64,000 nucleotides of DNA from Guillardia theta CCMP2712 (GCF_000315625.1 NW_005434615.1:130852-194851), one strand, 5' to 3'. Shown: positions 1-57,133, numbered from the stretch's first letter. Made by a program: numbers and translations. The notes: a model not told the origin generated them from the letters alone.

Positions 1-1
1 T

Positions 2-3000
2 GCGGTATGCTTTGCCGAGATCAATGATGTTCCGGCGATATACCAGACAGGAAACTTTTCGTTGTTTGAGATTTTGTTCAGCCATCCGCAGGCACTCTCT
101 CACACCAATATTTCCATTCGATTTCAGGCTGAGATGACCATCTTTCCTGGTTCTATCATTCACATTCTTTTCCCCGGATTTGTGCATGAAGATCGTAGCA
201 TAAACGTGCAAAACACACCTTTCAGTGACATACAATGGATTCAAACAGACTCTACAGTGCAACTGATAGTTGACAAGATTATTGACAGCATGGAAATTAT
301 CACTATGGATATTAATGTAAACTTTTTAATTCCTGGAATTGGAGTTCAGAAATGTGGGGTTTTAGTATTCATCAATGCAACTTCCGGACCCATTCAGCAT
401 GGAATCTGTCCTCAGATTAATCCGATTGGCGCTTTCTTGCACACGAACATGAGCTTTATACCAGCTGCAGCAGGAAAAGAAGTTGAAATAGGGCTTCAAT
501 TCAATGTTCAAATGAAAATACGGCCAGGAGAAAGCATCTTCTTGAAGTTACCATCCTTCATGCGTAATACGCAGAAATTGAATGAGACTTATGGACTGAC
601 TTGGAAGCACGTTGGACAAAATCTATCAACTATTGAAGGTCAATGTATCCTCGCATCATGGAATAGCAGCTCGTACCTGCTCCGACTTGAAGTCTGTCTT
701 CAGGACATCCCCGCAAAGGCCGATGTAGAGATTGTGATCCCTAGCTCATTCGGGCTTCGACTGCCGTCGTTGGGCCTCATGCAGAATCAAGAAAGTCTGA
801 TGATCTCATGCGATGCTGAGGCTGGAAAGGTACCGCCGACATCGATACAGGAGACTTCTGGGGTTGGATATTTCACGAGGACGAGCCTAGGCTTCTTGGA
901 TGCGAACGATCAAGGAGAGCGTTTCGTGCAAGCAGGCAGGGTCGTGCGACTGGTGCTTGAAGTCGAGATCGGAATGAAGCTGTACCCAGATGACGAGCTC
1001 GTACTGGGATTACCCGGATTTATGTTGACAGCTACACCAACCGATCTCACCATCAACGCATCGTCAGGCAATGAGTCCAGCCCTGCTTTCCATGTGTCAA
1101 TCCAACCTGCATCCAACGAGGTGGTGTTGACAAGCATCACGGAGGTCGAAGGAAACACCTTCCTCACCTTTGTCTTCCCTTCGACGTATGAGATCATGCT
1201 GCCTCAGACAGGCGTCGCACCGAACCAGCAGGACCTTACTTTAGAAGCGCGCTCTTCCTCACGGCCAGTGGCCCCAACACCCTTCGGTACCGTACAGCCA
1301 GTCGGCGCATTCTTGAATGCGTCGCTATCATTCGACCCGCCTGTTGCAGGATCGAAGGCAAACCTTTATCTCAATTTTACTTGTTCGATGGAGATATTAG
1401 CCAACGAGTCGATCGCAGTAAAGCTTCCTGACTTCTCGAGCGATCTTTCGAGCATGATCTTGCAAGACGCTATCGAGGGAGTGATCGCAAACGCAACCTG
1501 GGACGGGAGTGCGAACCAGCTCACTCTTGTGTATCTGAATCACACCAGGAGGAACCAGGGGTTCAGCTTCGAGATATTGCAGATGTTTGTGCTGCCGACA
1601 CTAGGAGTGAGGAGGAGCTACAACAACATCAGCGTGAGCACGGAGGCAAGACTTGGCCCTGTTCATGAGAGCAGACAATTTGTCGTCAACTATTTTTCTG
1701 TGGTGTTCAACTCAACTTTGGCATTTTCCAATCCCAAAGCTTTACAAGTTTCGAACCTCAGTATCAGCATGTCGATGCAAATGGATCTGCAATACCAAGA
1801 CAGCATCGTACTTTATTTGCCATACTTCAATCTCAATACTGTGAACATTCCACCGGAAAATGTGGTGATCGCCGTCGAACAACTGGAATCAGTTTATCCT
1901 TTAGCAGTTTTCTGGGATAATGCAACAAATATGCTCTCTTTGATGGTGAATGGCTCAATTCTAGCTGAATCCTTTGTTGTCATCAACGTTATTAGCACAG
2001 TAGATTGTTACGTAACCCTTCCATCCTGTGGTGTGTCAACAGGCAGCTCAGGGATCAAATTTTCAATCAAAGCCTTTGATGGTATTGTTATGTGGAAAGC
2101 TTTTGATCATTTGCTTGGCTACAATTCCTTTTTACTCGGCTCCACTTCAGTGGACTTCCATCCAAGAAAAGCTGGAGCCGTAGTTGATTTGAGCCTTCAG
2201 TTCCAAACTTGCTTTTCAATCAAGGAAGGTGACAGGCTAAAGCTATACTTACCTGGGTTTACTGGTTCTGAGTTAAGTTTGCTTCAATTGAGCAATTACA
2301 GCTTGCCTATAAAGCTGATCACGTGGAATCCCCTTGAATATTTGCTCTCCATCATGCTGGCGGAACATATTAACACTTCAAATGTTGCAATTGCTCCGTT
2401 GAACATTAGCATCTCACTTCCCGTTGTAGGAATCAGATTGCAAACAGAGATTCTGATTGGTCTTGATTCCATTGAACCGATCCAACTGGAGCGAATCGCT
2501 CATGTACCCTTGATAGGTTCATTCACAAATTCGACGACTCTACGGTTCGGCAGTTCCAGGGCTGGTGAGAGGAGCAGCCTTGAGTTATCTTTCACGGCAC
2601 AAACGAACTTAATCGAAAACGATTGCATCTATTTGCAAACCAAGTTTTCGTGGCTGTACAACGGAAGTGGATGTAACGTTAGTGAAATTTGGGATGTTTA
2701 CTATCTGGAAAATCAAAGTATGCTACTTCTATGTCTGCAGAATTTCACAATCGCAGCAACCGATTGGGTCTTCATGACTCTGCCCATGACATGTGGGTTT
2801 GTCATTCCAGCTGATGGTGTTCGAAGCAGTGACCAAAGGATTCTCATTGGTTCGAACGCAACTCTCGGGCCTATCCAGCCAGAACCATTCGCTACGGTTG
2901 CTCCAATTGGCGCCTTCATCCTTTCGGCGTTCATATACGTTCCACAAAATCGATCGATTCGCTTGAGGATGAAACCAGCCATGACGGTTGTCCCGGGCGA

Positions 3001-6000
3001 AAGCATCTATTTGCTCTTGCCCGTCTTTGATGGCAAAACGATCAGTAACATGACCATCCCAGGTCAACACTGTCTGCGTGCATCATGGAATAGCAGCTCG
3101 TACCTGCTCCGACTTGAAGTCTGTCTTCAGGACATCCCCGCAAAGGCCGATGTAGAGATTGTGATCCCTAGCTCATTCGGGCTTCGACTGCCGTCGTTGG
3201 GCCTCATGCAGAATCAAGAAAGTCTGATGATCTCATGCGATGCTGAGGCTGGAAAGGTACCGCCGACATCGATACAGGAGACTTCTGGGGTTGGATATTT
3301 CACGAGGACGAGCCTAGGCTTCTTGGATGCGAACGATCAAGGAGAGCGTTTCGTGCAAGCAGGCAGGGTCGTGCGACTGGTGCTTGAAGTCGAGATCGGA
3401 ATGAAGCTGTACCCAGATGACGAGCTCGTACTGGGATTACCCGGATTTATGTTGACAGCTACACCAACCGATCTCACCATCAACGCATCGTCAGGCAATG
3501 AGTCCAGCCCTGCTTTCCATGTGTCAATCCAACCTGCATCCAACGAGGTGGTGTTGACAAGCATCACGGAGGTCGAAGGAAACACCTTCCTCACCTTTGT
3601 CTTCCCTTCGACGTATGAGATCATGCTGCCTCAGACAGGCGTCGCACCGAACCAGCAGGACCTTACTTTAGAAGCGCGCTCTTCCTCACGGCCAGTGGCC
3701 CCAACACCCTTCGGTACCGTACAGCCAGTCGGCGCATTCTTGAATGCGTCGCTATCATTCGACCCGCCTGTTGCAGGATCGAAGGCAAACCTTTATCTCA
3801 ATTTTACTTGTTCGATGGAGATATTAGCCAACGAGTCGATCGCAGTAAAGCTTCCTGACTTCTCGAGCGATCTTTCGAGCATGATCTTGCAAGACGCTAT
3901 CGAGGGAGTGATCGCAAACGCAACCTGGGACGGGAGTGCGAACCAGCTCACTCTTGTGTATCTGAATCACACCAGGAGGAACCAGGGGTTCAGCTTCGAG
4001 ATATTGCAGATGTTTGTGCTGCCGACACTAGGGGTGAGGAGGAGCTACAACAACATCAGCGTGAGCACGGAGGCAAGACTTGGCCCAGCAGTTTCGCGTG
4101 ATTTTGTGGAGGGCATTGGTTACTTGAGCAACATCTCTCTGAGGGCCGTTCCTCCGAGGGCTGGATCACGAACGGATGTTGAAATTTCGTTTGTCGTTCA
4201 TATGATGCTCTTACCTGGAGACATTTTGCAGGTTTCACTTCCAGACTACATAGTTTCAGGAGTGCAGCAGGTAGTATTCTCCAGTGGGAACTATAGTTGG
4301 GAACTGTCTCGTGAGGAGGATTTGATTCGTTTGCATCTCAACAGTTCTATGGGAATATATCCAGATTCACTTGTATCATTTGTCGTGAATGAGATGATAG
4401 GTATTGACCTTGTCGTAAGGAATGATACGTTTCCAAAGATGCTCTTTCCCACTATTGAAGTGTCAAAATGTGCAGATGGCAAAGTGTTGTCGAAGCAATT
4501 TGATTATTTTCCCCGCATATTTGTCATTGGAGATTTCCAGAATTCGAGTTTGAATTTTAATCTAACAGATGTCAGGGCCAACCAAGCTTGCGATATCTGT
4601 ATTGATGTCTTCCCCATTATGACGCTTTCAATTGATGACCTCGTTGTCGTAAAACTTCCTGGGTTTCATGGAGAACCAAATCGCAATGTGAGCTTCAATT
4701 GCAAACCTCCGGATCTCATTCGAAATATTTCTTGGGACCCAATTGCTGAAGAGGTCTCGATGTTGCTGAAACGAGAATACTATGGTAATATACATGCATG
4801 CATTTTGAAAGAATCATTGTTGTACCTTCCACAACGAGGTATAAGGATGAATGATGATTCATACCGTGTGCGCACGAATGCAATCGCTGGTCCTGTGATG
4901 GATAAAGCAATTCAGTTGGTCGAACCTGTAGGTGCTATCAAATATTCGAGCATCTCATTCCGTCAAACCTCAGCAAGTGCTGTATCTATCCAAGCGAATT
5001 TGATTTTCTGGATGAACCTTTTCGAGCATAGTTCTCTAGTCCTCTACGCATATGACATGTCACTGTCTGGTGCAAAGGCTTTTATTGCAGGAGGAGGGTA
5101 CTCTGAAAGCTCTGTTAACAGTACATGGAGAACGGACTGTGCATGTCTGTCTGTTGACATACCAGAAGCAATGACTGCTGAAACTAATGTATACCTTCGT
5201 GTTGAAGGGGACTTCGCGCTCCCAAGCACTGGAATCTCTAGAGATGAGCAGGGTTGGAGGGTTGGAGTTCAATCTGATGATGGAAATATTCTACCGACCC
5301 CATTCATCCATGTTGAGCCAATCGGACATGTAGATGTGGAAATATTCATCAAGAATGGTTCTTTCACGTTGCAGAGTATAGAAATGCATTTTTATATGAA
5401 GCTTGAACGTTTCGAAAGGGTTGATTTGATAATCAAGGGATTTTCAGGAAACTCCACGTATTGTCAATACGTCCCTTCACTGCCAGAAAATGCGTTGTCA
5501 ACAATCATTTGGAACTCTTCTGCTCCACAGATGACTTTCATAGCAGAAAAAGACATACAAGCAGGAACGCTAGTGTCAGTCGATTTAAGTTCGCTTAGTG
5601 TGACAAGTCCTCCACCTGATTCAATTGCAGGTTGCTGTCAGATTTTTTCATCTGCAGTCGCAGGACCGGTGAACTTCTCACCTGTTCTCGTTACGTTCAG
5701 CACAAAGGTCTGGACAGGCACAGCTTTGGGAACCACTAAACCTGTCTTCTCAAGCAGTAGCTCCACTGCAGCCCTTACTTCGGGAACGACCTCTGCAGCA
5801 ACCTTGTTTGAAAACACGACGACACCGATATCAGAAACAGAAATGCTGGTCACAGGTACAGAGCTTCAAACTACCACACCCTTCATCTCAAACAGCTCCA
5901 CTGCAGCCCTTACTTCGGGAACGACCTCTGCAGCAACCTTGTTTGAAAACACGACTACACCGATATCAGAAACAGAAATGCTGGTCACAGGTACAGAGCT

Positions 6001-9000
6001 TCAAACTACCACACCCTTCATCTCAAGCAGTAGCTCCACTGCAGCCCTTACTTCGGGAACGACCTCTGCAGCAACCTTGTTTGAAAACACGACTACACCG
6101 ATATCAGCAACAGAAATGCTGGTCACCGGGACAGAGTCAAATTTAACCGCACCCTTCATCTCAAACAGCTCTGTTCCATCAACAACACCTTCACTGGTTC
6201 CTGTTGATGAATCAACTGCAGTTCCACGAATAGATGTGATCATGTCAAAAGATGGACGAATAAGCCTCAAGTTGATCTTTCAGACCAATGGGATGATCGA
6301 GAGCAACTCAAATGCATCGATATACTTCCAAGGTGTTCAGAACCAATCCTTTCTTCAAATGACGATTGAAACAAATAATTGTTCTGTGAACATATCTGCT
6401 AAGTATGAAGTTCCATCAAATGGCTATTATTTTGAGTTTCCATGTATGACAAGTTCGGGGTCCAATGTTTCGATTCGTGTTGCAGATCTCAGTCTCCTTG
6501 CAAGTGGACCGAATATAACCCGACTGGGAGCCAGCTTAATTGCAGAGGTCCAACTCCAAGATGGCAAAACCACGTCAAAAGAATACGTCTTCCCTTCAAT
6601 AGATATTGGAAACATCAAATCGTCCCTCAACTTCGGTTCATCAGCAGCTCTGCTTATAGAGTTAATACCGAATTTTGACATGCAGAGCTTTGACCTCCTG
6701 AGCATAACTCTTGGGGGCTTCCTGGGTGACTGCGAGGGTGATCTGGTCCCTTACCTCGCCTTCGACTCCTCCGTCTTTAACCTCTCCTCTGCTCTCTGCA
6801 ATACGTCAAATGTTGCTGTATCTCTGAGCCTACAGATAGGATCCGCCATCCCCAAGGGCACATCCATTTCGTTCATGGTCAGCAAGTCTGCAGGAATCCA
6901 GCTCCCAGCAGCAGGCCTCACAACCTCGGCAGACTTGGACAAGGTGACTATCCGAGCGGATGCCAAGGCAGCGTTAGTGTTCGAGACACCCTTCTTGTGG
7001 ACAGGCGGCAGCATCCAACGCGTGGGAACCTTGCAGCAGTCAAGCATCAGGTTTGATGGCACAGACTGCTCGAGCATAGAATTGTCAAGCATCAGTCATT
7101 CTTGCATCCGTGCAGGCAGCATTGTGAATGTAAAGGCGTCGTTCACAGCTTCGACACCGTTCCAAGCCAATGAATCCTTCACGCTGTGTATGCCTGGCTT
7201 CCGAGGGCCGGAAAATGTCTCGTACATCTCTCTGACCAACTCGAGCGTCGCGATCCGGAACAACAGAGCGCTGTGGGACCCTGCCGGGTGTGATGGGGCA
7301 GCCTCACTATCGTTCGTGTATCGCGACAGCATTGCAGCCAACGTGCGGAGCTGCGTGGCGATCTCGTCTGACGCCGGCATCAGACTACCGACACTGGGAG
7401 TCAGTTATGCGACCGGTTTGTACGTGCGGGCTGTTGGTGTATTGTTGAACCCAGAGTTTACGCAAGTGCAGCAGATTGGCTTTGTGCAAAAGTTTTATGT
7501 GGATTTTCAACCTGCATGGAAGGGCTCGGTGGTGGACGTTCAGATTGAAATTGAGGCGGGACCATGCCTGAAGGCCAACGATGAAATCTTCATTACTTTG
7601 CCGCTTGCGGCCACTGAAGCATCCAGTCTGGTGTGCGATAATGTCACCCAATACTTTTCAAATTGCTCGATAATAAGCCAAGATTGGGAATACAACTGTA
7701 ACAGTCAGAGTGGAGGAGTTCTTGTTCGGCTTGTTGTATCCCAAAACATCTCGGGAAATTTCAGCTTGAGTTATACGATACCAGCTTCTTCTGGAATCCG
7801 TTTACTTTCAGAACAGATTGACGGGTATTCTATCAGTTTGCAAATAGAATCAAGCATCTGCGGCCCGATGTTCTCTGGCATTTCAAATGTTTCATCACTT
7901 CTAGGTAACAATGACTTCTGCGACGTGCAGATCAGCTTTGTTCCAGCCGCCCTTTACAGGCTAGTTGCAGTGGTTATCAATTTTGATGCGTGTGTTCAAG
8001 TATATGACGGCGATACACTTGCAATTCGGCTGCAGAATTTCTCGGGAGATTCCTTCAATATCACACTGGAATCATCCATCAATGTCACATGGAATTCGGA
8101 GAGTGAAGCATTACAAATTGTGTTTCCTCATCTTTCCTTGGGTGAAAAAATCAAGGTGGTGACGCCAGCCTCTCTATATCTCCCGAAAGATGGGATTTCA
8201 AGCTTGTCAAATGGAATATATTTGAACTTCACATCGGATAGAAAAACTCTGTCATTCTTCAGCCAAATAAAAGTGCAATTGGTAGGGTCACTCAAATATA
8301 TTCCTGAGGTGAAAATGCTACTGTCAGATAACAAGATTGCAATAAGCACGAGTGTCGTTGCTTTGATGAATCTCCTACCTCAGGACAATTTGACAATCGT
8401 ACTTCCCATGTTCGCAGAGGTCTTACAGTGGCCCACCCTTGCGTCAAACAGCATATTTTCAAACGTCTTGTGGAGGTCCGAAAATCAAACACTTACTCTC
8501 ACTGTTGGCTCAGTCATATCATCTTACACTGTCACAGACATTGTTGTCAGATTCAACAACTCCTTTCTGACTTTGCCTCCGAATGGGCTGGTTCAGGTTT
8601 CCAACACCATTGGTTTGCAGCTGACGTCAGCGTCAGGCTTGTCGTTCGATTATTTCCCTCTGACCTTCAGAGGCCTTGGTTTTGAACAATCGAAGATCAC
8701 GTTTTCTCCGCCAATTGCTGGGAGGCCAACCGGCATTTCAATCCGTCTGGTAGCTCAAAGTTTAATCGCAAAGGGACAAATGATAGAAATATACTTGGAG
8801 GCATTCACAGGAAGTGACGTGTTTGACCTTCTGGTTACCAGTGACTTTACCGCTCCGATATTCTTCTGTTCATGGATCAGTCAGGAACGAGCTTTGAAAT
8901 GTCCAATTCAACGAGATATCCCAGCGTCAAATCCATTCACGATCCGTTGGCCTGATTATGCTGGAGTTGCTTTGCCGGAACAGGGTGTGAACTTCTATGG

Positions 9001-12000
9001 GCCAAGAATGATCGTGAGTGTAAATACCGTCATGGGATCTAAGATTTTTCAACAACAAATCCAAGATTTCAATCCTGTTGGTGCATTGAAATATGCATAC
9101 ATAGTAAGAAATGAAACAGACTTCGGCACGTTATGGAGCTTCGTCTTTATGGCCTACATGGATATCGAATCCAATAGCTCTTTTTCGATCTATTCCAGTG
9201 GTTATAATTCAGGTCTAGACGTTTGCTTCGATATGGTTTCTTCGCCTACCAACTTTGTTCAAGATGGACACATCAAGAATTCCACGCTTTCATTTAAATC
9301 TATAACCCCAGTTTCAAGGCTGTCAGAGCTCAAAGCCACTCTGTTAGATCCTCGGGTCTTGGAATTTCTAGAAGCTGTGCGCAATGGAAATCACCTGATT
9401 CTGCTTTCCCTGCTATCATCCACTGGCTCTGTTTCTGATTATTCCATGGAATTTCAATCAATTTCGGGTAGGACAAACTCTAGCTCCAGCATCAATTCGG
9501 CGCAAGTGAGTGTCCGAATCCAATATGAAAATCCGTATGCGGATGAGGGTACAGGAATTCTAATCAACCTTGAAACGAACATTCCTATTTATGTCGGGGA
9601 CGAACTCAACATTGACTTGTTGGGTTTCGAAGGGTCCAAGGTCTCGAATTTCAGTGTAGTAAATGATGTTGGGGTCGTTCAATGTGAAGGATCCTGGATA
9701 CAATATAGAGAGACCATCGTCAATCCTCTCCCTGAGGTGGGAAATGAGACATGCTGGCTGAACACTTCGAAGAATGTGACATATGCTGAATGGCAAAACG
9801 TTACCTTGTGGCAACTGCAATACAAGATTGTGAATATTACGACATACAAGAATGTTACGAATGTACTTGAATTCGCAGTTTTCAATCCTGAGGCAGAAGA
9901 GTGCGAGATTGTGTACAAGAATGAATCTGTCGTGCAGAAGCATTTCGAGATGGTAAATGTTACTGAGAACGTGTCGGTGACCATCTTGCAGCCTGTGACC
10001 AAATATTTTGAGGATGTCCAGGTATCGATGTGTCCACAAAACAATTTGACCAACATCAGTGATGACAAAGTCATGACAATCCAGACCCTAAACCGTCTCA
10101 GCCTTAAATTTGTGAAGAATGTAACCTCAGGAAATTCGCTACAGCTTCGAATTCCAGAAACCGCTGGCATAAAGTTGCCGACCGAAGGCATTGCAGAAAA
10201 CGAGCAAGCTCTTGTAGCTTACTTGGATTCTGCACAAAGAGAAGTGATTTACAAGGCCGATGTGTTGCATTCCTTCCCAGACGTGGGTTCATTCAGAGAA
10301 AGAGTGGTTGAATTGAGTGGAACTAAGATTTACAGAGAATTGGAAGGTATCTACTCAAGGCAAAGATTCACATGGAATCTTAGCTCGGTTTACGTGAGCA
10401 ACGACAGAAAGTCTTGTATCGTCTCTTGTGGTCGCTACCTTTCTGTTTCCAAAGATTGCAATTTTGCGATAGGAATCAACTGCCAAGACGTTGTGCTGCG
10501 TAGCAAAATGGACTCCGAGCCCATCCTTTTTGCAAACAATCAGTATCAGGTCACCTGGGAGGAAAGGAACGGGTCAACCTGGGTTTCTACGAAGAGCATT
10601 TCACTGGTGATTCTTCTCTTTGTTTTTGACACTTTCTAACTCCTAAACCAGGTTTCAAAACCTCCACGAAGATCAGCCTTGCTTCGATTCAGTGATGAAG
10701 CAAAACCAGGTACTCCAAGTTCTTTGTCATTGAGCCTAAAACCAAAGGGAAACATTGTTCCTCTTTCCCAAATCCTGTTGTCGCTTCCTGGATTCACAGG
10801 CATCGAAGGTGCTCGATCACACGACCTGATGATTGCAGGAAACAAGTCAGAATTGTTTTATGCTAAGTGGGGAAGATCTTGTTCAGACTCGTCATTTATT
10901 GTTCTGATTGCGAAAGAAAATACGTACATTGCACCAGAGGAGGATATAGAATTGTACGTTTCTGCGATCCAGAACATATCACTCCCTTTGAATGGAATTA
11001 CTGAGAATTCAGGAATTCAAATCATTCTTCGACTCACTACTTATCCTAAATTTGCGATCACTGTGGTTCCAAATTTTTTGCTCGTATCACAGGCTTCGTC
11101 TCTGTCACTGGATTTTAATCCCAAATCGCCTGGAAATCCAACGACCATGTACCTTTCTGTGATTCTGACACAAGATTTGCGACCCAACGATATTATTTTG
11201 TTGCAACTACCTGGGTTTCAGATTCAAAATTCATCATTAGCGTTCACCTTCTTCTCGAATCAGCAGGCAAACTTTGAAGCGATGGTGGCAGACGGTGAAA
11301 GAGTTACTTTGACCAGCTTGCAGTCCTTTGCAAGTGGCGAAAGGATTGAGGTAAGATATCATAGTCCGATAGAAATAAGGATTCCTCAATATGGTATCTT
11401 AAACACTCAACAATTCCCTTCCATGAGAGTACAGTCTGCTTTAGGTAATGTCCCTTGGACAGTGATTGAGAATACTTCGCTTGTCGGAAGTGTGACCAAT
11501 GCTTCAATTCATCTATCGAACACGGAAAGTGTCGGTGTACTCGAAGTCATGATCCGATTTCATGCTCTAATGCCCCTTGCTCCTGCTGATTTAATAATCT
11601 TACAGTTTCCGACCTCACTAAAGCAAATCTCGGACACTTTGAATTTGTCATCAATGCCTTACAAGTTCGAAGATCCATTGAGAAATCTGACACAGAACAC
11701 TTTGACCTTGAAGATCAATGAGACTATACAGATTACAGAAGAGATTTCAGTATCAACACTAGTTCTTGCAGCAGCTGCCCAAGACAGATTTCAATATTCA
11801 TTGAATCTGTCAATTAGCTCCATAAATGGTAATATCGATGCTTATGAGCTCTCCTTCTTAAATCAATCCGGGCTCTTACCTGCTAGACCTTTGAAAATCG
11901 AGATACTGGATTCCCGCATGGTAATTGTACCTCCGATGCAAGGTGCAGAAGTCAAATTCGGAATCAATCTTACTCTCATTTCGAATGAAGATATTGATTC

Positions 12001-15000: not shown

Positions 15001-18000
15001 CTATCGTCATTCGGAGACAGTCCATGATAGTCCTTCCCCGGCATGGAATCCTGAGTGAGAATGGTATCAAGATCAAATTGGATGCCCGATATGGTTCTGC
15101 CGATTCGCGAACAATCCAGACCGTGCAGAAAGTTGGGTTCTTAAACCACACTACGATTTCATTCTACCCAGCAAAAGCCTCTACTAACAGTGATGTCTTG
15201 ATCGAATTCACTCCTTTCATGGCTTTGTTCCCCAGCGATATGATTGTAATGGAACTTCCAGATTTTGTAGGAGACGAAAGTCTGATTTCTTTGACTACTC
15301 ATGGGCTTGTCTCAGGCTTTCAGTGGTTGCAACTTTCGCAGACCTTGTCGTTCACAGTTTCGAGCGAGGTGGCACCTTTTACCCGAATTTCAGTGAATAT
15401 TTCCAAAGGTTTTGTTCTGCCTGCAAGAGGAGTGCGACTGAAAGAGAAGGTGACGATCAAATGCTATGCGAGAACAGGCAACACAGCTGCAGAACGACTT
15501 GACGTCATTCAGGCTGTCGGAGCAGCCAAGTCTACAAGTTTGGCATTTTCACAAATAGTTGAGGGGGTTTCAACGTCAATCTACGTCACTATCACCACCT
15601 TCATGAAAGTAACACCGGGCGACAGAATCAAACTTACCCTTCCGAACTTGCATTTGTCCGATGGTAATGCTCAAGCAGCCATCTATTCAAGAGTTTTGAT
15701 TCAAGGAGAGCTAGTTGATAGAGTTGTCAGCAAAAACAAGACAGTGATCAAATACGTCAATCGTTCGTTACCTTCAGACAACAGGTGTGTTGTTGTACCA
15801 ACAGAAGTGAACAGCAGCGAAACAGTCTATCTTACAGAGCAATTTCAAACTAGCGACAGAATTGAAGAATATACGACCTACTTGCAGAACTTGTCCGTTG
15901 TGAATGACGTATTGACGCTGATCTTCCCATTTGCATATGCTCCAAATACAAGCTTTGAGATCAACATTACTGGTTTCCTGTTTCCTGGCGGCAAAACATA
16001 TGACCGGAACGCGTTTGCGTATGAGATGCAATGCAAAGAGGGACCAATTCCATCTACAACGTTCGAATCTGTCCCATACGTAGGTTATTTTACGAAGGCT
16101 AACATGACTTTCTACAACGGAATAGCAGGAAAAATCAGTAATGCTGCGCTACAACTTCAAGCAAGCATGACTCTGAGGAAGTCAGAAACCCTTTTGATTT
16201 ACCTCCCTGGATTTGCAGGTGATTCAAGGGCAGATGTCGACGTTTTGCTTGCTTCTTCTTTCAAGGTCAGACTGCTCGGATGGAACAATCAAACTGAGAC
16301 GCTCTCTCTCACAATGGCCGACGACGTGCTTGCTCTTGAATCCTTTGCTTTGGACATCATGTCAATATTGCGGTTGCCGATCGAAGGAATTCGCGTCGGC
16401 GAAACTCGATTTAAAATCTCAACAGATGCATTAGCAGGAGCAGTGTCGTTACAAACGGTAACATTGCAGGCAGTCGGATCCCTGAATAACAGCGAAGTGA
16501 TGGTCATTGATCCCCCGATATCTTCCACGTATGTTAGCGTCAACGTCTCCTTCACAGCCTTGATGAAAATCTCTAAGGATTCCAAAATGACGATCCGATT
16601 GGATCAGTTCAAGTTGGATGCTGCTAAGTCTGTTAACTTACCATTCTATGGAACTTTGTTCGATACCGTGCAATGGGATAGACAAAGCTCATCGTTGTCT
16701 ACAGTCTTTAAGAATGTCGTTGAGATCAGGTCAAAAGTCTTTCTAAGCATTCCACTGATGGCAGGCATTTTCAGTCCGATTGCAGGACTCACAGAGAATA
16801 AGGGAATACAGATGTCCATTGAAGCCAACCCCTATGGAAACTTGCTTCCAACCTCATTCGGGACATTCAATCGTTTCGGATCGTTTTATTCATCTCCAGC
16901 CTTGAAGTTTTGGCCTGCCACACCTGGAAATGCAGTCTACTTAGAAATATTCTTTGTTGCGTCCATGGACATCGTTGCCGATGAGCTTGTACTGATTCGA
17001 TTGCCTGAATTCACTGGAGGCTATCATTCTGAAAGTGACATCTCGGATGAGTGGCAGGTGATGTGGACCGGCACCCAAGATTTAATCAGAAATGGCCGAG
17101 GAATACCTAGTTTTACTGTGGCTCTCGTTGCAAAGAGTTTCATTACCAAAGATAGAACTGTAAGTCTTGTCATTCCTCAGAGTTTTGGAATCAGACTGCC
17201 AAAGTATGGTGTTTCATCTGACTATTCACAATTCTTCATCTCTTCAGATGCTGTTGCTGGCCCCATCCTACCGTTTCGAATCACCAACTTCACACCCATA
17301 GGATCATTCCTGTCAGGCCCTCACCTGGAATTCAGCTCTCCTTGCCGAGCTGGAGAATCTTGTGAGCTGCACATCTCATTTCAAACTACCATGAACTTCA
17401 CTGAATGGGATGTCATCCAATTTGTGCTCGCTGATTTGAAGTCTGATGTTGGCGATGGTAATGTAACTGAACATTGTGATGTGATTGTTCAGAACGTGTC
17501 CAAGAGAGATCATGTCGACATTGAGTGGAAATCTCTCAACTCCACAATTCTGATCGTGTTTAAAGCATCAATACCATCACGGAGTAAGATTGAATTCGTA
17601 ATTTTCAAGTCTATGCATCTCAATTTACCATTGCAAGGCGTGCGTAGGAATGACGTGACATACTTGGTCACAACAAATGCTAGCCTTGGCCCAATCTCAC
17701 TCATCCCTTTTGCGAGTGTGAATCCGATAGGTTCTTTCATGCTTTCAACGAAAATGAAGTTCTATCCGCCTGTTCGGCCTGGATTTCCGGCTGAAATGGA
17801 GTTGAATCTGGAAAACTTTATGAGCTTTCAGGCTGGAGATTCTTTGTTCTTGCATCTACAAGGATTCTTTCAGCAGGTATCAGGTTACAACATTGAGGTC
17901 ACGAGCAACCCAACAAATCTTCTGGCTAGCGTTAAATGGATAGCGGATGCAGAGCTTTTACAACTCATATTCCAGCAGGCTGTATCAAGAAACACAAAGC

Positions 18001-21000
18001 TTTCGTTCGTCGTTGCTCGCGATTCTGGTCTATGTATACCGTATGTTGGTGTGAGGAGCAATGACACAAAGGTAGAAATCAGCTCGGACGCATTCGATGG
18101 TCCTGTCAGTCCCACACATCTGATATCTGTTGAGCCTGTCGGTTCATTCACCAACACTTCCATGATTCATTTTGATCCTGCGGTTGTTGATCAGGTGTCG
18201 AATATCTCAGTTAGTTTCCAGGCTCAAATGGAATTGATCCCAGGCGATCAAATTGTTATTACTCTGAACGGATTCAATCTCTCCCGTGCTCAAAATCGTA
18301 CTTATCTTAATGACAAGTTTAAGATAATCATTTCAAACCAGAAGGTTGCTGCTGAAGTTCTTGAAAGCATTCAAGCTCTCACGGAAGTGAACTTTGTTTT
18401 GAGCTCAGAGCTTGAAATCAGGTTGCCTATCGTTGGAGTAGAGAGAGAACGCTGTTGCATGGCAGATATGCTCTGCTGCATCTTGATTGGAACAGACGCT
18501 AGATACGGCCCAATGTCTGACTTGCCTGTGTATTATCAGCAGCCCGTCGGTTCATTCAAAGACAGCACCGAAGTAGAATTCTTCCCACCTATAATAGGCA
18601 AGTTGGACAGTATCGCGATCCGCTTCACGACAATCATGGCAATCTATACAACAGAGACCATCACAATCTCGTTGCCGAGTGTGACATGTTTAGATGTCAC
18701 CTGTATCTCAGGAGTCGAGAAAACCAGCCAGGCCACTTTTTCATGGAGTAATGATACATCCGTGTTGACCTTGACCTTGTCGAAAGACATACCAGAGAAT
18801 AGAAAGACCAACATGAATCTCCCTGCCAATTTTGTATTGCTGCAGACTGGAAATAAGTGCGATAACTCAGAGATTCGAATCTCCACACAAGCTCGAAAAG
18901 GCCAAGTTCTTCATGAGAGGGTCAAGTCTCCGGGAATCTTGACATCGGGTGAACTGCAAAGCACAGCTCTTAGGTATGGAAAGGCTGAAGCTGGCACCAA
19001 TACTGCACTCTACCTGCAGTTTGTTAGCACAGTAACCATCTACCCAGGCACGAACCTCACCCTCCGACTGCCTCGCTTCTTTTTGACGAATTCGTCCCAA
19101 TACTCCAGCGATTGGAAAATACTAGAAGAGGCTAACAGCAACGGAGTCGTGGTGTATTTGAACGCGCAGAGAATCATCTCGGCGTGTGAGTTGGTGGAGG
19201 TAACTATTCCTGAAGGGGTTGGGATTGTCCTTCCCATCTATGGACTCATAAAGAACTTTCCTGGCCTGACCGTCTCATCTGATGCTGTTTCTGGCGCTGC
19301 TCTCGAGACTTCCATAGAAGACTCGCCAGCTTTTGGAGCCTTCTTTGAGGTGCCGACACTTCGATTTGAGAACAACAGCTCTCCCGTCCGAGCTGGATCA
19401 ATTGCTAACATTTTCTTGACGTTCAATCTTGTCGCCACTGTCCCAATGGGTACAAAGATTATCTTGACACTGCCAGACTTTGGTGGAAACGAATCTAGAG
19501 GAAAGACTAGCACTCCTGGATTGTATGCCTCTTTGAATTGGACAAGACCCCAATTGACAATTACTCCTATGGAAGACGTTTTGAACAACACTAGGGTTGA
19601 AATCATAATACCACGAAGCATGGGGATCTCGCTCCCCGTGAATGGAGTCCGTAGGAATGATGCAAGGTTTGCAATGTCGATACTCTCGGAACAAGCTCCG
19701 ATCGATCATGTGCAGCTGTCAATCGGTCAGCCTGTGGGATCATTCAGAACAAACAACTTGCAACCAAGTTTGTCCTTCAACCCACCGATAGCTGGAAGAT
19801 TGAGCACCATTACCGTGTCCTTGTTCCCACAGATGGAGATGCGTTCAGAAGACAAAATCACCATTTTATTTCCAATGTTTGGTTACGGTAACCAGGTACA
19901 ATTGAGGGTCTCCTCAACGCCAGAAAATGTTATTGGCAAATTCAATACTTCTACTGCGATGATCAATGGAGAGCAAACGATTCTACTGGACCTCACAACC
20001 TCTAGGACGATTGCTGCTGAGAGCAAACTCATCTTGTATGTTGAGGGATTGACGATACCCGACCGAGGAGTCAGAAAATATGATGTTACAATCCAGATCG
20101 AAACGGATTCGAATCAGGGCCCGATCCCTCCAACTCCATTTCCAGTCGTCCAACCAGTCGGCGCATTCAGAACCAAGCAAATGCTTCTGACTTCATTCCA
20201 AGTTGGAAAACCGACAAGCGTGATCCTCATCCTGTCGCCCTGGATGGAAATTCAATTCGGAGAAACAGTCTCGATTCGCATGCCGGGCTTCTCCTGCATT
20301 GGCCAAGGACAGATCGATCTAACCATAATATCGGAGCGACCGGGAATGAGGGGGCCGTATGTGATATCTGCGTGGACCTCGTCGATGAGCACGCTGTCAA
20401 TTACATTCAAGGAACCGATCAATGCCATGGATGACATGGTCTTCAGGATTTCAGGCTCTAATTGTCTCATTATCCCTGAATTCGGTGTGCCGAGCTTGAG
20501 CGGACGTGCTAACCTGTCAAAGAAGTACGATGTCAGCATGCCAACCAACATCTCTGACCTCATGACAATCAGTACCGAGGCGAGCTTCGGACCCGTGCTT
20601 CCAACGATCCTACAGGACGTTCTGTCTCCCGTTGGCTTCTTCAAGATGACAAGAATTCTGTTCAACGAAGGACTTCCTATCAGGGCGGGACAACCTTCCT
20701 CGATCGCGTTCGAGTACATTCCTGGAATGTGGTTGTTCCCAACTGACAACGTAGCTTGAGAATGCCAGGATTTCGATTCGGCATGAATGAATTCAATGTG
20801 ACATGGGAACAGTTGCGTGCGAACATCAGTGCTACTTGGAGCAGCAACGATTTCACTCTGACGATGAGAGTGCCGGGCATAGTCGAGGCTGGGACGACAG
20901 TCAGAATCTCTATGCCGCTCAGTGTTGGAGGTGTCAATCCGGACGTTGGAATCAGACTCAATGACCCTAACTTTCAGATTTCTGCGAATGCTGTTGACGG

Positions 21001-24000
21001 GAAGGTCTCATCTTTTGTTGTCGGCAGTGTGCAACCTGTGGGTTCATTCTTAAACACTGCAAGACTAGGCTACTTGTATGAGAGTGTCAACCAAGGCAAA
21101 GCAAACGCGGTCAACGCTTTACTCTTGTCTTTCACGCCATACATGAACATCCTCAAGAGCGAGAATGTGTTCTTGCAGCTGCCTGGCTTTTACGCTGCGG
21201 ATGTAGATAACTTTCCATTGCAGTCTCACAATCTTGACACAGGACGATTGTTTGCGTCCTGGATGCAAGTAACCCAAACGCTCACCATCTCCTTTCATCA
21301 GGATGTGCCGGCAAACTTCACAGTTATCATCTTGATCCCTACGAACATGGAAATCCGTCTGCCACCTGCGGGATTGACCTTGAACCAGAAGTCGCTGATG
21401 ATTGGGTCCAATGCAAGACTCGGCCCCGTCCCCTTGACTTCAATCCCCAGCTCAGCTGCTGTAGGAAGTTTTGCTTACTCAAAGATTTCCATCACGCTTG
21501 ATTGCAATCAGAACTTGTTGGCCGATATCAATGTAAGTTTTGCCATGAGAAATGAGATCCGAAAGTACGAGCTGGTCACCATCAGATTGCCACATTTCTC
21601 ATGGGATAAAAATTCCTCCTTTGTGCCTGTCGCGAACGGTGGACTTGGACCCATTGCAACAGTACAAATTTCACAGACAAGTGATAATGTTGACATTGTG
21701 CTTGCTTTCACGGCGAACATACAAAGCGACGTTCATTTGTTGCTTCCAAAACAAGCTGGAATTTCGATTCCGATCGGAGGAGTCGATAAGAATGATCAGA
21801 GTCTGACAATCTCATCCAATGCAGCGTCGGGACCTGTTCTTCCAACTTCATTCCAAGAAGTCACGCCAGTGGCCGCTCAGATCAATGCGATCGTAAGTTG
21901 GAAGCGAAGCTGCCCCGGAGACGATCTGATTATGAACTTGACTTTGAGTGTCGGTTATGGACTCATTGCTGGTGATGTCATCATCTTGAAGTTGGGCACG
22001 AAGTCAGACTCACCGAATGTGCTAGAAGAGCAATTCGAATCGAGAGATCTGCAGTCCATCCTCTGGGAGGGATCAACAGGAACTCTTCGACTCACCGTTG
22101 GCAAAACCATTTCCAAATCGTCTTGGATAAGTACAGGCTCTCTGCCGTTCCTCCTCAAACCCTCCGACTTGGGCAATGCCACCAACGGGACTCTCAGCCT
22201 GTCAATCGCCTCAGCAGAGGGATCAGTCTGCCCCATCGAGGGACGGGCTTGGCAGATACCAGCGGAGTGTCCTAAAGTATCAGCAGCTCAGATGGTCCCC
22301 TCGGTGTCGTTCACGTTGGATACGCCGGTAGCCGGCCTGACGTCAAACTTCTCCGTCCGGTTTCAGTTAGCTTTCAATCTTAGCGCGGGCTCGAAGATCA
22401 TGCTGAACTTGAAGTCGCCGTCTCTTAGCGACCAACGGCAGCCGTACACGCCAACATGCACGAGTGAACAACTTCCGTGTGTGTTGAGCCCCATAACATT
22501 TGTAAGTTCCACCGAGTTGTACTTCATGAACAGCCTACAATTAGAACCCGAGGTCGACTATCTGATTCACTTCCAACAGTCTCCAGTTCTCATCCCTGCG
22601 GAGGGATTGTATACCAACTCGACTTCGGTTTCCATCAGGTTCGAGGGCAACGAGTTCTCGTACCAGGTGGACATCAAGCCCATCTCGCCCATCGGAAGAT
22701 TCTTGTCTAGCAACCTCTCAACGAGCCCAAGAATTCCAAGCTCGAATGCAGCCATCATGCTTTCCTTCATTTATGATCGAAGCTTGCAGAAAGGGGATGC
22801 TGTTGAATTCTTACTGCCAGGTTTTGTTGGGAAGACTCAAACAATTCAGAATGGCCAATCAGCCATCGTTGACAGCTACTGGAGCGATGAGACGAAGGTG
22901 CTGTCTGCCGTGTTCAAACAAGGTTGGTCAGCAAAGGCTGTCTTCACCCTCGAAGTCCTCGCTGCCAACGGACTCATCACCCCGGCGCAGGGCTTGCCTC
23001 AGAATGATAAGAACCTTCTAGTGAGTACCAATGCGTCGGAGGGGCCAGTGAGATGGACTCCAATCCTCCATGCCGAAGCGATCTTGGCCTACAAGTGTCA
23101 GCGTGTTGCTCTTCAAGTTCCTGGCGGATACTGCCAGGGCGACTACTCGCTGCGAGTTTGTGCGACAAACACCCTGCAGGCGCAAGCGTACGCGAACATG
23201 GTGATAAGCGAACAGCTCTCGACGACAACTGCAGCTTCTTGCAATCGGACTGGTCAGTCACTTTGTGCAACCTTTCCTGGAGGTAAATTCACTGGAGTGA
23301 GCAAGGACGCTTGTTGCCAGATACTGGGCGTTGAGATGTTCTCTACATGTGAGACGGACAGTAACTGCAGAATAGACACTTCTTATGGAACTTTGCAGAA
23401 CCTGCAGATCCCCAAGACTTCTTCTACCTGCTGCAACTACTGCAACGACGTATTGGCTGGAACGTCGAGCCACAGGCTGTGCGTTGCCGATCAAGCGTAC
23501 GTGGCAGAGAGCTGCAGCTCCTCGCTTCCAAGAATCACTCCGTTCCAACAAAGCGCCACCTGCTCCACCTCAGCTTGCTCAGGATACTCGCTGGGCTTTG
23601 TTGAGAGCGTGATTGACCCGACGGCGGGCGGGCAGGTATTGACGGCAGACAACATCGGTATGTCTGTGCCCCCCAATGTCTGGCCTCCAGATGCTGGCCC
23701 AGCGTCCGTCACTCTGATCACTGAAACTTCCCCTGCTTCCCCGGGACAAATCGCCGCTGGTCCGGCCGTCTTCTTCGGGCCGACGGGCCTCAAGTTCCCG
23801 GAGCCCGGGGTGAACTTGTCGCTGCCGATCAACCTCCAGTCGCTTCCTGCGGGAACCTCGCTCGCTAACCTGAGAGTCTTCAAGTTGGTGAACGGAACCT
23901 GGACGTTGCATCCCTTCGGACTGGCCGGGAGCCTCGAGACTGGGGTGCTCTCAGTGAAAACTCTCAGTTTCTCTCAGTACCAGATCCAAGTGGTGCAGGC

Positions 24001-24811
24001 GGTAGTCGGACCGCAGACCACCGAGAGCGCGACGCAGACAACAAGTGGACAGGAGTCCAGCACAACGCCAAGTGTGCAGGTGACCAACGGTGTCGTGTTC
24101 ACCACCCCCGTTCAACCAGCCGCCAAGAGCTCGTTCTTCACTGTGTTGAACATTTCGCTGCTCGTCGGCATCATCGGCGGAGTTCTCCTGGTCTTGGTCT
24201 GCTGCCTTGCAAGGCGTGTGTGGCTCAAGTCGAGATCTTTGAAGAGAGCAGGACTCCATGAGACCCTGCTGGACTCGCACAGCACCACCAGCTCCGAAGG
24301 CTCGACCCCACCAGCCAAGCCGACAGAGCAGGTGGAGAAAGAGAAGGAGCCGGCCAAGGTTTCGAAAGAAACCAAGAAGCCAGAAGTGCCTGTGGAGGTG
24401 AAGAAGCAGGACATGTCGTTCTTGAGACCAGCATTGCAAGAGATACAGTCCACGGTGCAGGTCCAGTCTTCGCTCGTGATGGGTGATGGCACAATTCCAC
24501 CCTCCATCTCGGACTCTCTGGACATTGAAGAAAGGTTGAACCAGAAGTTTTCGTTGTATCCAGACATCAATGCCCGGATACAAGCAGAGGCTGACTTGGT
24601 CATCATAGACGACAGGTATTGTGAACACTTTCACCTCTTTATTCCTGACTTTCACTGCAGTCCGCCTCCTTCCCCCGTTGCCAGCGTGACCAAGAAACGC
24701 CCGACATTGAACGAAGAGACTTTGATGTCGCAAGACGACATAATGGGCGAGGCAAAGAAGCGCCCGACTCTCAACGAAGATACTTTAACTTCACAAGATC
24801 AGATCATGTGA
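2..24811 (+). CDS. Giant (>8,200 aa, 5'-partial) type-I membrane protein: ~50 tandem ~130-aa beta-rich repeats, S/T mucin stretch, Cys-rich region, ZU5-like domain, TM helix, cytoplasmic tail
   Basis: The frame is open from base 2. ORFs 62..10639, 10679..12721, 12756..20759 and 20756..24811 share one repeat motif (LP..G...N...L.ISS.A..GPV.PT.F..V.PVG.F...L.F.P..AG....L.F...M.L..GD.I.L.LPGF). They are joined by GT-AG introns 10607..10651 (45 nt, phase 0, branch TTCTAAC) and 12714..12762 (49 nt, phase 1), both restoring frame. There is a 1-nt frameshift at ~20756 and a probable in-frame intron at 24616..24660. TM helix ISLLVGIIGGVLLVLVCCLA lies at ~24150-24210, followed by RR. Confidence 0.85.
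653..1659 (+). repeat. Copy 1 of a 1,007-bp near-identical intragenic duplication
   Basis: Matches 3080..4086 (offset 2427 = 809 codons). The only difference I spotted is a synonymous GGA/GGG. Confidence 0.95.
3080..4086 (+). repeat. Copy 2 of the 1,007-bp intragenic duplication
   Basis: Same sequence as 653..1659 (ASWNSSSYLL...STEARLGP). Confidence 0.95.
5745..6170 (+). repeat. Coding minisatellite: three 135-138 bp units encoding 45-46 aa Ser/Thr-rich mucin-like repeats
   Basis: CTCCACTGCAGCC recurs at 5761, 5896 and 6034. Peptide STAALTSGTTSAATLFENTTTPISETEMLVTGTE occurs three times (one substitution in copy 3). Confidence 0.95.
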
Positions 24812-24903
24812 GGAAATAGAAAAACTTTCAAGTTATGATTCAATAAAATCGGAATCAAATATCGCTGTGATCGTACATTGCAATGTATGTCAGATCCCAC
24901 TCT

Positions 24904-25876
24904 TCACAAAGTCGAACCCCATAAACACTCGCAGGGCAACGAGCCTCCGATCGAAGTCATGACTTGTGAAGTCTCCATCTGCCTGCCCAAGGATCTCCAT
25001 GAGCACATCCATGTCCTTGAAAAGTCACGATAAGTTCCAGACTCGGATCGGAACTTCACAGGATCACCGACCTGATATGCTGAGATGCGATGTAAACCTT
25101 CTTCCATGTCTGCCATGAGCACTTTGTCGGATTCTTGAGAACCCTTACGTAGCATATTAGCCGGAGCAAACAGACGGAAGCTCGCACCTCGTAGTGTGCG
25201 GCTACCATCCTGTTCAAGATGTCGTTGTAATAGTCCGAGCCTTGCCAAGCTGCAAGACGTCTCAATGACGGACATGATAACGATGACGATGATTGTAGTT
25301 TGTTCCACCTTCACGGTTGGCTCGTTGCCACAAAAGTCCGAGCACGACTTTGACATCTTCCCACTCTACGCTCTGTCCGTTGACCAAGTTTCTCAACCAA
25401 TCCATTCTAGAATTCTTTCAGAAAATAGCGAAAAAGTCAATGGGGAGAAACAAGTAAGATGGCATCAACCTCGTCAAACAACTTCGTCCTGAGCTGAAAG
25501 GCCAAGTCATGCGCATCTCCTTGGGAGTAACCCCATCTTCATGCCAGATGTTACTAACGACTCCAATAATCAAGACAGAATCAGACCTCCATGTCGGACT
25601 ATCCCATCTGCCCATTCTGATCTGCAAACACTTTCCTTGCACACTTCTTCTTGATGAACAGAAACCTGACAAAGTGTTCAATGGAACTATGTCACAGTAC
25701 CAACCAACCCTTCAGATCATTCTCTCATCTGCTTTCATCTGCATCCTTCCATTCTCTTCTTCTCTTCTTCTCACTCTTCCGCTTCTCATCTCACCCAATC
25801 TTCCCGGCATGACGAAACCTGCGGCCAAGTGCACGAGACAAGCCATGAGCCCCACCAGTCGAACCATGGTTCGCAT
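24904..25876 (-). CDS. Multi-exon hypothetical protein with a putative bipartite plastid-targeting presequence
   Basis: ATG at 25876 gives MRTMVRLVGLMACLVHLAAG-FVMPGR (signal peptide, Phe at +1). After an intron comes the Arg/Ser-rich transit-like GFCSSRRSVQGKCLQIRM. Downstream exons fall in ORFs 25056..25265 and 24904..25356. Exon structure is approximate. Confidence 0.5.
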
Positions 25877-45635: not shown

Positions 45636-51969
<6,334 letters not shown>

Positions 51970-56868: not shown

Positions 56869-57133
56869 GGAGGTATGCGGAGGCAGGGAGTCGAATTATT
56901 GGTCGTATTGCAATCTTTGTCGCCTGTGGGTGGGGTGTTCTGAGTACCCCTCATTTTGTCTTAAAGTTTTAGGGTGTTGTTTATTCTAGTATGGGTAGGG
57001 GTATTCCCTCAACTAGAGATACAAGGGAGTTCTGAACGTGGGTGAAGCGAGGGGGGAGAGAGAGGGAGAGAGAGAGAGAGGCAGGGAGCGAGCAACACAG
57101 AGAGAGAGGCAAGGAGCGACTAACAGGCAAGAG

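Follow-up and report, generated by a model that had tools for sequence, protein, structure and literature searches.

A 64,000-nt stretch of the Guillardia theta CCMP2712 genome (NW_005434615.1:130852-194851, hereafter the window, with positions counted from its first letter) carries four long open reading frames (ORFs) on the plus strand, at 62-10639, 10679-12721, 12756-20759 and 20756-24811. They very probably belong to a single gene that encodes a giant predicted surface glycoprotein. In the 87.1-Mb, 669-contig assembly the window is C59:130852-194851. The four ORF pieces are free of stops when translated from the window edge, and translation of the upstream DNA shows that the leftmost frame stays open for a further 44.6 kb. 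This open frame has 18,418 codons, and an independent genome search returned the same figure. The whole gene occupies C59:84580-155662 (~71 kb), of which the window carries only the 3′ third.

With orthologous sequences of Hanusia phi as a guide, we placed five exons and four short GT..AG introns of 49, 45, 49 and 45 nt, all on the plus strand. Exon 1 (C59:84580-86368), located as an upstream ORF with a start, contains the ATG and the putative signal peptide. Intron 1 (49 nt, C59:86369-86417) gives a join that matches the Hanusia fragment P0137. Exon 2, a stop-free frame of 55,040 nt with repeat units throughout, begins at C59:86418, 44,433 nt upstream of the window, and its 3′ end covers window positions 1-10606. 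Intron 2 (10607-10651, 45 nt, GT..AG) is the top-scoring splice against the Hanusia fragment P0032, which stays colinear through the join of exons 2 and 3; a longer intron starting at 10598 was dropped under the same guidance. Exon 3 (10652-12713; 2,062 nt) again consists of repeat units. A repeat unit spans the join at intron 3 (12714-12762, 49 nt, GTAAGT..CAG, phase 1), where ORF1 of the Hanusia-like contig L018 is colinear as well. Exon 4 (12763-24615) measures 11,853 nt in the reference and 11,854 nt with a missing T discussed below. Intron 4 (24616-24660, 45 nt, GTATTG..TGCAG) is in frame, absent from L018 and the Hanusia fragment P0005 and retained in P0158. Exon 5 ends with the stop codon (24661-24811). 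The spliced coding sequence (CDS) of 70,896 nt yields 23,631 amino acids (aa), or ~23,605 aa counted from the second Met, with a calculated mass of 2.58 MDa and a pI of 5.2.

A previous analysis of the window without database searches (the sequence-only reading) had joined the four ORFs into one CDS, open at the left edge, by means of two canonical introns and a 1-nt slip, and had estimated >8,200 aa with ~50 repeats. The fusion, the two introns (10607-10651 and 12714-12762) and the open left edge all stood. The in-frame intron at 24616-24660 had been missed, the start lies in an upstream exon, and the size had been underestimated about threefold, as ~156 repeats are found in the complete protein.

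The slip turned out to be of another nature. The third and fourth ORFs have open frames that overlap at 20747-20756, and the apparent shift lies at 20755/20756. When public runs were aligned to 19200-25199, the contigs of two runs of the same strain from 2011 (X1 and X2) carried an extra T behind 20755, so that the reference has TT and the read assemblies TTT (20755-20757). With contig sets that total 54-68 Mb and contain the introns, both runs are evidently genomic DNA. The additional T brings the downstream frame into phase, and a full repeat unit then crosses the site at 78 bits. The Hanusia sequences P0158, P0005 and L018 are in frame at the same site. The slip is thus a homopolymer error of the reference assembly, and a programmed frameshift or a pseudogene at 20756 is ruled out by the T in the read assemblies. 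The independent read contigs, 12-14 kb long, agree with the reference without other differences; a 1-nt deletion at 24105, in the region of the stalk and transmembrane (TM) helix, was treated as a probable contig error, seen in X2 only, at depth 3, and not in X1. The read-supported T was added only for length and statistics, and searches used the separate pieces.

Several observations tie the exons together. At three of the four junctions, namely introns 1 and 3 and the T site, a repeat unit runs across the join; intron 2, bridged by P0032, falls in a degenerate unit. Hanusia phi fragments from EukProt tile an ortholog colinearly across all junctions at 62-75% identity: P0137 spans the N-terminus and the intron-1 join, P0003 contributes 6,378 aa in a single alignment, and P0035, P0059, P0040, P0027, P0032 and P0158 supply further parts. 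L018, a Hanusia-like JGI contig of 12.8 kb, spans residues 19403-23631 over intron 3, the T site and intron 4; it was taken as cDNA because intron 4 is absent from it. Judging by contig shape and by the source data sets, the Hanusia sequences are most likely cDNA-derived; we take the EukProt set and the JGI sample series to come from the MMETSP transcriptomes. The entire span contains one signal-peptide-like start and one TM helix.

Public annotation splits the gene into fragments. The model XP_005828433.1 (GUITHDRAFT_112426, 1,891 aa) shares 99% identity with a part of the gene; of the 18,418-codon frame it takes in residues 10506-12104 only (counted from the first codon of the frame), and its N-terminus is different. 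If taken at face value, such a model, confined to part of the big exon, would mean that the locus is made of several adjacent genes or transcripts, and the fragmentary state of the Hanusia contigs would fit with that. We find this highly unlikely: there are no stops over 55 kb, a single signal peptide and a single TM helix serve the entire span, repeat units straddle the junctions, and the Hanusia fragments overlap as well as tile. Homology searches with individual pieces were of limited use. Exon 3 had no match among catalogued proteins of 378-1,200 aa, a result which is explained by the length window and the word prefilter and says nothing on absence; under the same limits the last ORF as a query gave one weak homolog match.

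Most of the protein is an array of one repeat. A hidden Markov model (HMM) built from a single seed unit and refined in rounds over the four pieces found 57 units of ~137 aa in the window; re-iterated, it found 156 units in the complete protein, 133 of them near full length, which make up 89% of the chain. The unit, ~138 aa long and arranged in tandem, has the consensus lP..G ... Gpv ... pvGsF ... F.p..AG ... M.l..gD.i.l.LPgF ... W ... L.l, in agreement with the signature that the sequence-only reading had derived. In an alignment of 34 full units the mean column identity is 25% and no column is invariant; the array is therefore old and diverged, with no recent amplification.

The same reading had recognised no domain in the repeat, and database searches bear this out. 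No Pfam family reached its threshold in any protein piece, in the 34 single repeats or in the C-terminal module, and no NCBIfam family did so for the repeats. Neither the repeat profile nor the C-terminal region retrieved a PDB sequence above threshold. Big_8 (PF17961) did not match the pieces or the 34 single repeats even at E <= 1. DUF2808 (PF10989) came closest, with sub-threshold matches in three protein pieces (20.2, 18.7 and 16.4 bits against a gathering cut-off of 25.3; E-values of 6.5e-4 to 9e-3); it had no match in the 34 single repeats, and its Pfam model run against the G. theta genome found nothing at E <= 0.01.

The family itself is large. In a profile search, at least 1,010 representative proteins carry the repeat at E <= 1e-3, with 217 at E <= 1e-30, and many of them are 3,000-8,000 aa long with 20-50 units. 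The named carriers are cryptophytes (Hanusia phi and Cryptomonas curvata, A0A7S0LYZ3). Metagenomic relatives come from contigs with successive multi-thousand-residue ORFs on the same strand, and Pfam found nothing in two such relatives of 7-8k residues. From this arrangement we consider the metagenomic relatives to be probably giant split genes of eukaryotes, one of which, the locus of the protein P0009, would encode >15,000 aa in an uncultured eukaryote. P0009 itself, on JGI metagenome contigs of 62-67 kb (L016/L017), joins the repeat with LCCL and endonuclease I domains and is flanked on the same strand by ORFs of >5,341 and >5,004 aa, in a series of 5,341+, 4,748 and 5,004+ aa with short gaps.

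Within the array of ~25% identical units, self-blastn picked out six patches of 0.4-1.0 kb with 99-99.9% DNA identity, at offsets of whole unit numbers. In the window, 653-1659 (+) repeats 3080-4086 (99.9% over 1,007 nt), and 6710-7413 (+) repeats a segment 7,830 nt upstream, outside the window (99.6% over 704 nt); four pairs lie upstream of the window. It is exactly at the first patch that the Hanusia fragments P0040 and P0027 share an overlap of 267 identical residues. These patches could be products of gene conversion or assembly chimeras.

The repeat was modelled with AlphaFold2 from the 34-repeat alignment. The model (pLDDT 89.5) is all-beta, with seven strands, and Ig-like, as the earlier proposal of beta-sandwich beads on a string would have it. 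Its nearest solved folds are the Ig-like (DEv-IgG) domains of Gram-positive adhesins: in VIA comparisons Srr2 (4mbr) scored Z 9.2, SdrE 9.0, UafA 8.2 and ClfB 7.9, in a range down to 7.6, with rmsd ~3 Å over ~98 aa, and Foldseek gave SdrC at E 7e-4 (TM-score by query 0.51). Among ESM Atlas neighbours, Big_8 clusters scored TM 0.56-0.58 and unnamed eukaryotic clusters 0.64-0.66, while the best (0.71) was a bacterial cluster with DUF2808 in 36% of its members; an Atlas feature search returned unnamed clusters only. With DUF2808 the G. theta repeat thus shares sub-threshold matches and the best Atlas neighbour, yet every direct Pfam test failed; to our knowledge DUF2808 has no known function. We regard the repeat as an uncatalogued sequence family and confidently predict that it folds as an Ig-like sandwich, for which the MSCRAMM/Big_8 domains are the nearest, though only modest, fold matches.

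The upstream exon supplied the signal-peptide-like start that the window alone lacked: a basic stretch is followed by a 13-residue hydrophobic core (Kyte-Doolittle mean 2.15) and an A-H-G/A site (here and below a slash marks the bond cut). The array is interrupted chiefly at residues 5829-6503 (C59:102113-104137, which lies 28.7-26.7 kb upstream of the window) by an insert of 675 aa with a Cys content of 12%. It comprises ~8 units of ~85 aa whose cysteine pattern looks TNFR- or ephrin-receptor-like by eye, and it matched no Pfam family even at E 5.

The C-terminal end starts with a Cys-rich module and a beta domain, from which a Ser/Thr stalk of 43 aa leads to a TM helix and a tail of 184 aa. 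The Cys-rich module (23066-23593), delimited by alignment, has ~14 Cys that are invariant among homologs, with model pLDDT partly <50. The next segment (23594-24004) is, by fold search, an extracellular juxtamembrane ZU5/GAIN-like beta-sandwich. Near its end, the codons at 23969-23974 specify the Phe and Ser (residues 23367/23368) of a T-L-S-F-S motif, a candidate autoproteolytic bond. The TM helix (24134-24211) is the only 19-aa window with a Kyte-Doolittle mean >=2.0 in 23,631 aa. The cytoplasmic tail (24212-24811; 184 aa once spliced) ends in a duplicated KKRPTLNE-type motif. Identity to Hanusia varies along the protein: 70.5% in the repeats, 76% in the Cys-rich module, 89% in the ZU5-like domain, 58% in the stalk, 92% in the TM helix and 90% in the last 120 residues of the tail.

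The protein contains 570 N-X-S/T sequons against 233 ± 15 expected from composition (2.4-fold enrichment, z = 22.8), and none of them lies in the cytoplasmic tail; this distribution fits an exoplasmic, glycosylated ectodomain. The sequence-only reading had described the repeats as rich in sequons and the protein as single-pass with a Cys-rich, ZU5-like, TM and tail ending, and on all these points it proved right. Taken together, sequence features identify the product as a predicted type-I membrane glycoprotein of ~23,600 residues.

The fold of the juxtamembrane domain was assigned from a model of the C-terminal 356 aa, with pLDDT of 57 overall and 74-89 for residues 175-310. N-terminal to the sandwich pLDDT is <50, and a helical GAIN-A subdomain is not confidently modelled. 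VIA matched the domain to the ankyrin ZU5 (3f59) at Z 14.0 (rmsd 2.1 Å over 119 aa), and the top 18 Foldseek matches are all ZU5 or FIIND (E 3.6e-6; TM-score by target 0.58-0.63). Lower VIA matches include the GAIN domains of CD97 (Z 11.2) and BAI3 (Z 9.6), CARD8 (8.7), NLRP1 (8.0) and Nup98 autoproteolytic domains. The top five PDB matches of the C-terminal alignment profile are all ZU5, at E-values of 0.4-1.9, and Pfam ZU5 matches only two of 10 homologs (best E 0.012). The models thus give the domain a ZU5 beta-sandwich fold.

The S-F-S residues (301-303 in the model) fit the [H/S]-hydrophobic-/-[S/T] pattern of the autoproteolytic ZU5, FIIND, Nup98, GAIN and MAIN domains and sit in the turn before the last beta-strand, in the register of known scissile bonds: Phe 302 coincides with the aligned end of the cleaved chains of NLRP1 (1212), Nup98 (863), GPR56 (382), GPR110 (566) and GPR97 (249). 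Each of the nine homologs that span this site retains the F and S. CARD8 and NLRP1 self-cleave at SF/S at the end of a ZU5-like domain (PMC3210808). The features that define GAIN are not seen: the motif is S-F-S and not H-x-S/T, and one TM helix follows rather than seven. Elsewhere in the genome, C186:68042-68350 (L014) shows a weak match to the ZU5-like domain (33% identity, E 9e-4), and the module may anchor other G. theta surface proteins too.

G. theta has at least one more giant of this type. On contig C35 (~108,000-150,000, minus strand; L013, C35:106734-110366) an open frame of 13,956 aa combines the repeat of the C59 protein with an EGF-like insert, a Cys-rich module and a ZU5-like part that contains T-L-S-F-S; a stalk, a TM helix and a tail of acidic character are present as well. 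The ZU5-like part is interrupted by short introns, and the F and S are preserved in this paralog, which is only ~30% identical.

Selection on the gene was estimated by the Nei-Gojobori method from 3,531 codons aligned between G. theta and L018; synonymous divergence (dS) is near saturation, so its ratios to nonsynonymous divergence (dN) are approximate. Over all codons dN is 0.175 and dS 1.34 (dN/dS 0.13). The repeats (0.185 and 1.40; 0.13) and the tail (0.138 and 1.13; 0.12) have similar ratios, the ZU5-like domain (0.066 and 1.06; 0.06) and the TM helix (0.036 and 0.72; 0.05) have lower ones, and the Ser/Thr stalk has the highest (0.241 and 0.85; 0.28). Such ratios indicate purifying selection and exclude a pseudogene on the comparison of the two sequences. 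A decaying pseudogene or an assembly artefact would account for the frame break of the reference at 20756 and for the near absence of G. theta RNA, and mis-assembly could lie behind the near-identical internal patches. The frame break is an error of the reference, an intact frame of 18,418 codons would not be tenable by chance, the read contigs of 12-14 kb otherwise match the reference, and selection has been at work; the probability left for this explanation is close to negligible.

On balance we lean towards the view that the gene encodes a type-I surface glycoprotein of ~23,600 residues that serves as a fibrillar coat, surface-periplast element or adhesin on a breakaway anchor. As candidate roles the sequence-only reading had named a structural part of the cell covering, an adhesin and a shield against phages or grazers. 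The repeats would form a long, flexible, glycosylated rod, ~0.5-0.7 µm at ~4 nm per domain, projecting from the plasma membrane. By analogy with its structural relatives, the ZU5/GAIN-like domain, ~55 residues above the membrane, may cleave itself at S-F/S, leaving a stub of 264 residues (last strand, stalk, TM helix and tail) that would hold the 2.5-MDa ectodomain non-covalently through the last beta-strand. The result would be a force-sensitive anchor for breakaway or shedding, of the kind that GAIN, MAIN and SEA proteins have. Through the conserved TM helix and tail the stub could be linked to partners beneath the membrane, plausibly to the inner periplast sheet.

A number of observations weigh against this view. 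The signal peptide is long (~44 aa from the second Met). The best Z of the repeat model, 9.2, is only modestly above the Z of 7-8 typical of an Ig-like background. Pfam ZU5 (PF00791) reaches 12 bits against a cut-off of 21, and there is no invariant His near S-F/S, position 282 being H or Q. Localisation at the surface and self-cleavage are both predictions. In 13 putative G. theta RNA runs only ~0-1% of the sampled gene words occur, and a raw RNA-seq run has three reads on 6 kb among 19.8 M, in both orientations, which may be DNA carry-over. No search result states that the Hanusia sequences are cDNA. Near-zero expression in G. theta culture stands in contrast to strong constraint and apparent expression in Hanusia.

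Silence in culture would be explained if the same protein were no constitutive coat but an adhesin restricted to certain stages or conditions (for instance an agglutinin of gametes or mating, or a surface protein of the alternate life-cycle morph) that is silent in vegetative CCMP2712. Near-zero RNA despite strong purifying selection agrees with this proposal, as do the dimorphic life cycles of cryptophytes, with different periplasts (PMC7486100), and the almost full assembly of the ortholog in the Hanusia phi set. The Hanusia cultures, however, are also vegetative as far as known, yet apparently express the ortholog, and the second giant paralog makes a division of labour equally possible. 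Such a restricted role is a possibility to reckon with, albeit an unlikely one.

The signal peptide allows another destination. In cryptophytes, signals that target proteins to the plastid or the periplastid compartment have a signal peptide as their first half as well, and the protein might be kept in an endomembrane or periplastid compartment, or packed in an extrusive organelle, instead of reaching the plasma membrane. In cryptophyte bipartite signals Phe at +1 is typical of stromal targeting, and the residue at +1 after the predicted cleavage site here is Ala. A sequon-rich ectodomain, one C-terminal TM helix, a GAIN/ZU5-like module and a conserved tail make up a cell-surface architecture, so an internal location appears improbable, and the surface glycoprotein on a breakaway anchor remains the reading that we prefer.

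A secreted polypeptide of high molecular mass was reported to self-assemble into the surface periplast component in Komma caudata (Perasso, Ludwig & Wetherbee 1997, as cited in PMC6212826). Our literature search found no molecular identity for the cryptophyte surface periplast component and no paper that mentions the locus. A bolder version of the surface glycoprotein reading would see in the giant and its C35 paralog the molecules that make up the surface periplast or fibrillar coat of cryptophytes, with the 2.6-MDa ectodomain freed from its membrane stub by ZU5-type autoproteolysis at S-F/S and the tail marking the docking site on the inner periplast. This version is doubtful, more so than the stage-specific role; if true, it would be the first extracellular S-F/S ZU5-type autoproteolysis in a eukaryotic microbe.

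Parts of the proposed anchor have counterparts in known systems. The adhesion-GPCR GAIN domain and the bacterial and archaeal MAIN domain (Brogan & Rudner, bioRxiv 10.64898/2026.05.12.724683) are likewise extracellular beta-sandwiches just above the membrane under a huge adhesion-type ectodomain, with a hydrophobic-Ser bond in the turn before the last strand, in equal structural register. MAIN domains are cut at HF/S, their fragments stay together, and release of surface proteins under shear was proposed in the same work; a non-covalent tether released under force is what we would propose here by analogy. In contrast to GAIN and MAIN, the motif is S-F/S and not H-x-S/T or H-F-S, one TM helix takes the place of seven or of a bacterial envelope anchor, and ZU5 (Z 14) matches the structure better than GAIN (Z 9-11) does. 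With the ZU5/FIIND proteins ankyrin, UNC5, PIDD, NLRP1 and CARD8 (PMC3210808), the G. theta domain shares the fold (Z 14.0) and, as in CARD8 and NLRP1, an S-F/S located where the domain ends, ahead of a long beta-strand. In those proteins the domain lies in the cytoplasm, with UPA and death-fold domains after it, whereas that of G. theta is predicted to be extracellular and is followed by the Ser/Thr stalk and the TM helix.

For the ectodomain the nearest solved folds, at a modest level of similarity, are those of Srr1/2, Sdr and Clf domains of the MSCRAMM DEv-IgG/Big_8 adhesins. Giant bacterial adhesins (MpIBP, SiiE and LapA-type proteins) are built of tandem Ig-like sandwiches of ~100-140 aa and form sub-micron surface rods. 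Unlike them, the G. theta protein comes from a eukaryotic gene with spliceosomal introns, has a predicted signal peptide and TM anchor with no LPXTG or type 1 secretion (T1SS) signal, and exceeds most bacterial examples in length and with its ~156 repeats. It resembles membrane mucins of the MUC16 type in being a multi-megadalton glycosylated type-I protein with a juxtamembrane self-cleaving module (here predicted), and differs from them in its folded Ig-like ectodomain, with neither mucin repeats rich in Pro, Thr and Ser (PTS) nor a SEA domain. In size it comes close to titin (3.7 MDa; PMC3166861) and PKZILLA-2 (3.2 MDa, next to 4.7 MDa for PKZILLA-1; bioRxiv 10.1101/2024.01.29.577497), being neither a sarcomeric ruler like titin nor an enzyme like the PKZILLAs.

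In kind, giant surface proteins with Ig repeats above a juxtamembrane domain that cleaves itself are already known. What is new here is an undescribed repeat family, an extracellular ZU5-type S-F/S module in a protist, a near-titin size and a 55-kb exon. The protein is among the largest predicted in any genome and joins a very short list of those with >20,000 residues, from a gene that the reference annotation of a model alga cuts into pieces. Its repeat defines a large uncatalogued Ig-like family of cryptophytes and environmental eukaryote-like contigs. If the analogy holds, the logic of a self-cleaving beta-sandwich anchor, seen in animal adhesion GPCRs, mucins and, since 2026, bacterial MAIN proteins, would extend to a unicellular alga, with a FIIND-type S-F/S outside the cell. 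The gene also supplies a concrete candidate protein for the cell covering of cryptophytes.

Downstream in the window, ORFs at 31157-35494 (+) and 35551-36444 (+) encode a large protein of surface type with Ephrin_rec_like repeats (E 6e-17); the region 31157-36444 also gives weak bacterial cadherin-like, Big_9 and TRP-channel-like matches. Other neighbours are an NF-YB-type histone-fold protein (26032-26742, minus strand), an EGF-domain protein (50221-51162, plus strand), an ABC transporter membrane domain (57038-58024, plus strand) and a cofilin/ADF-like protein (62870-63610, minus strand); these four, between 26032 and 63610, are ordinary eukaryotic genes.

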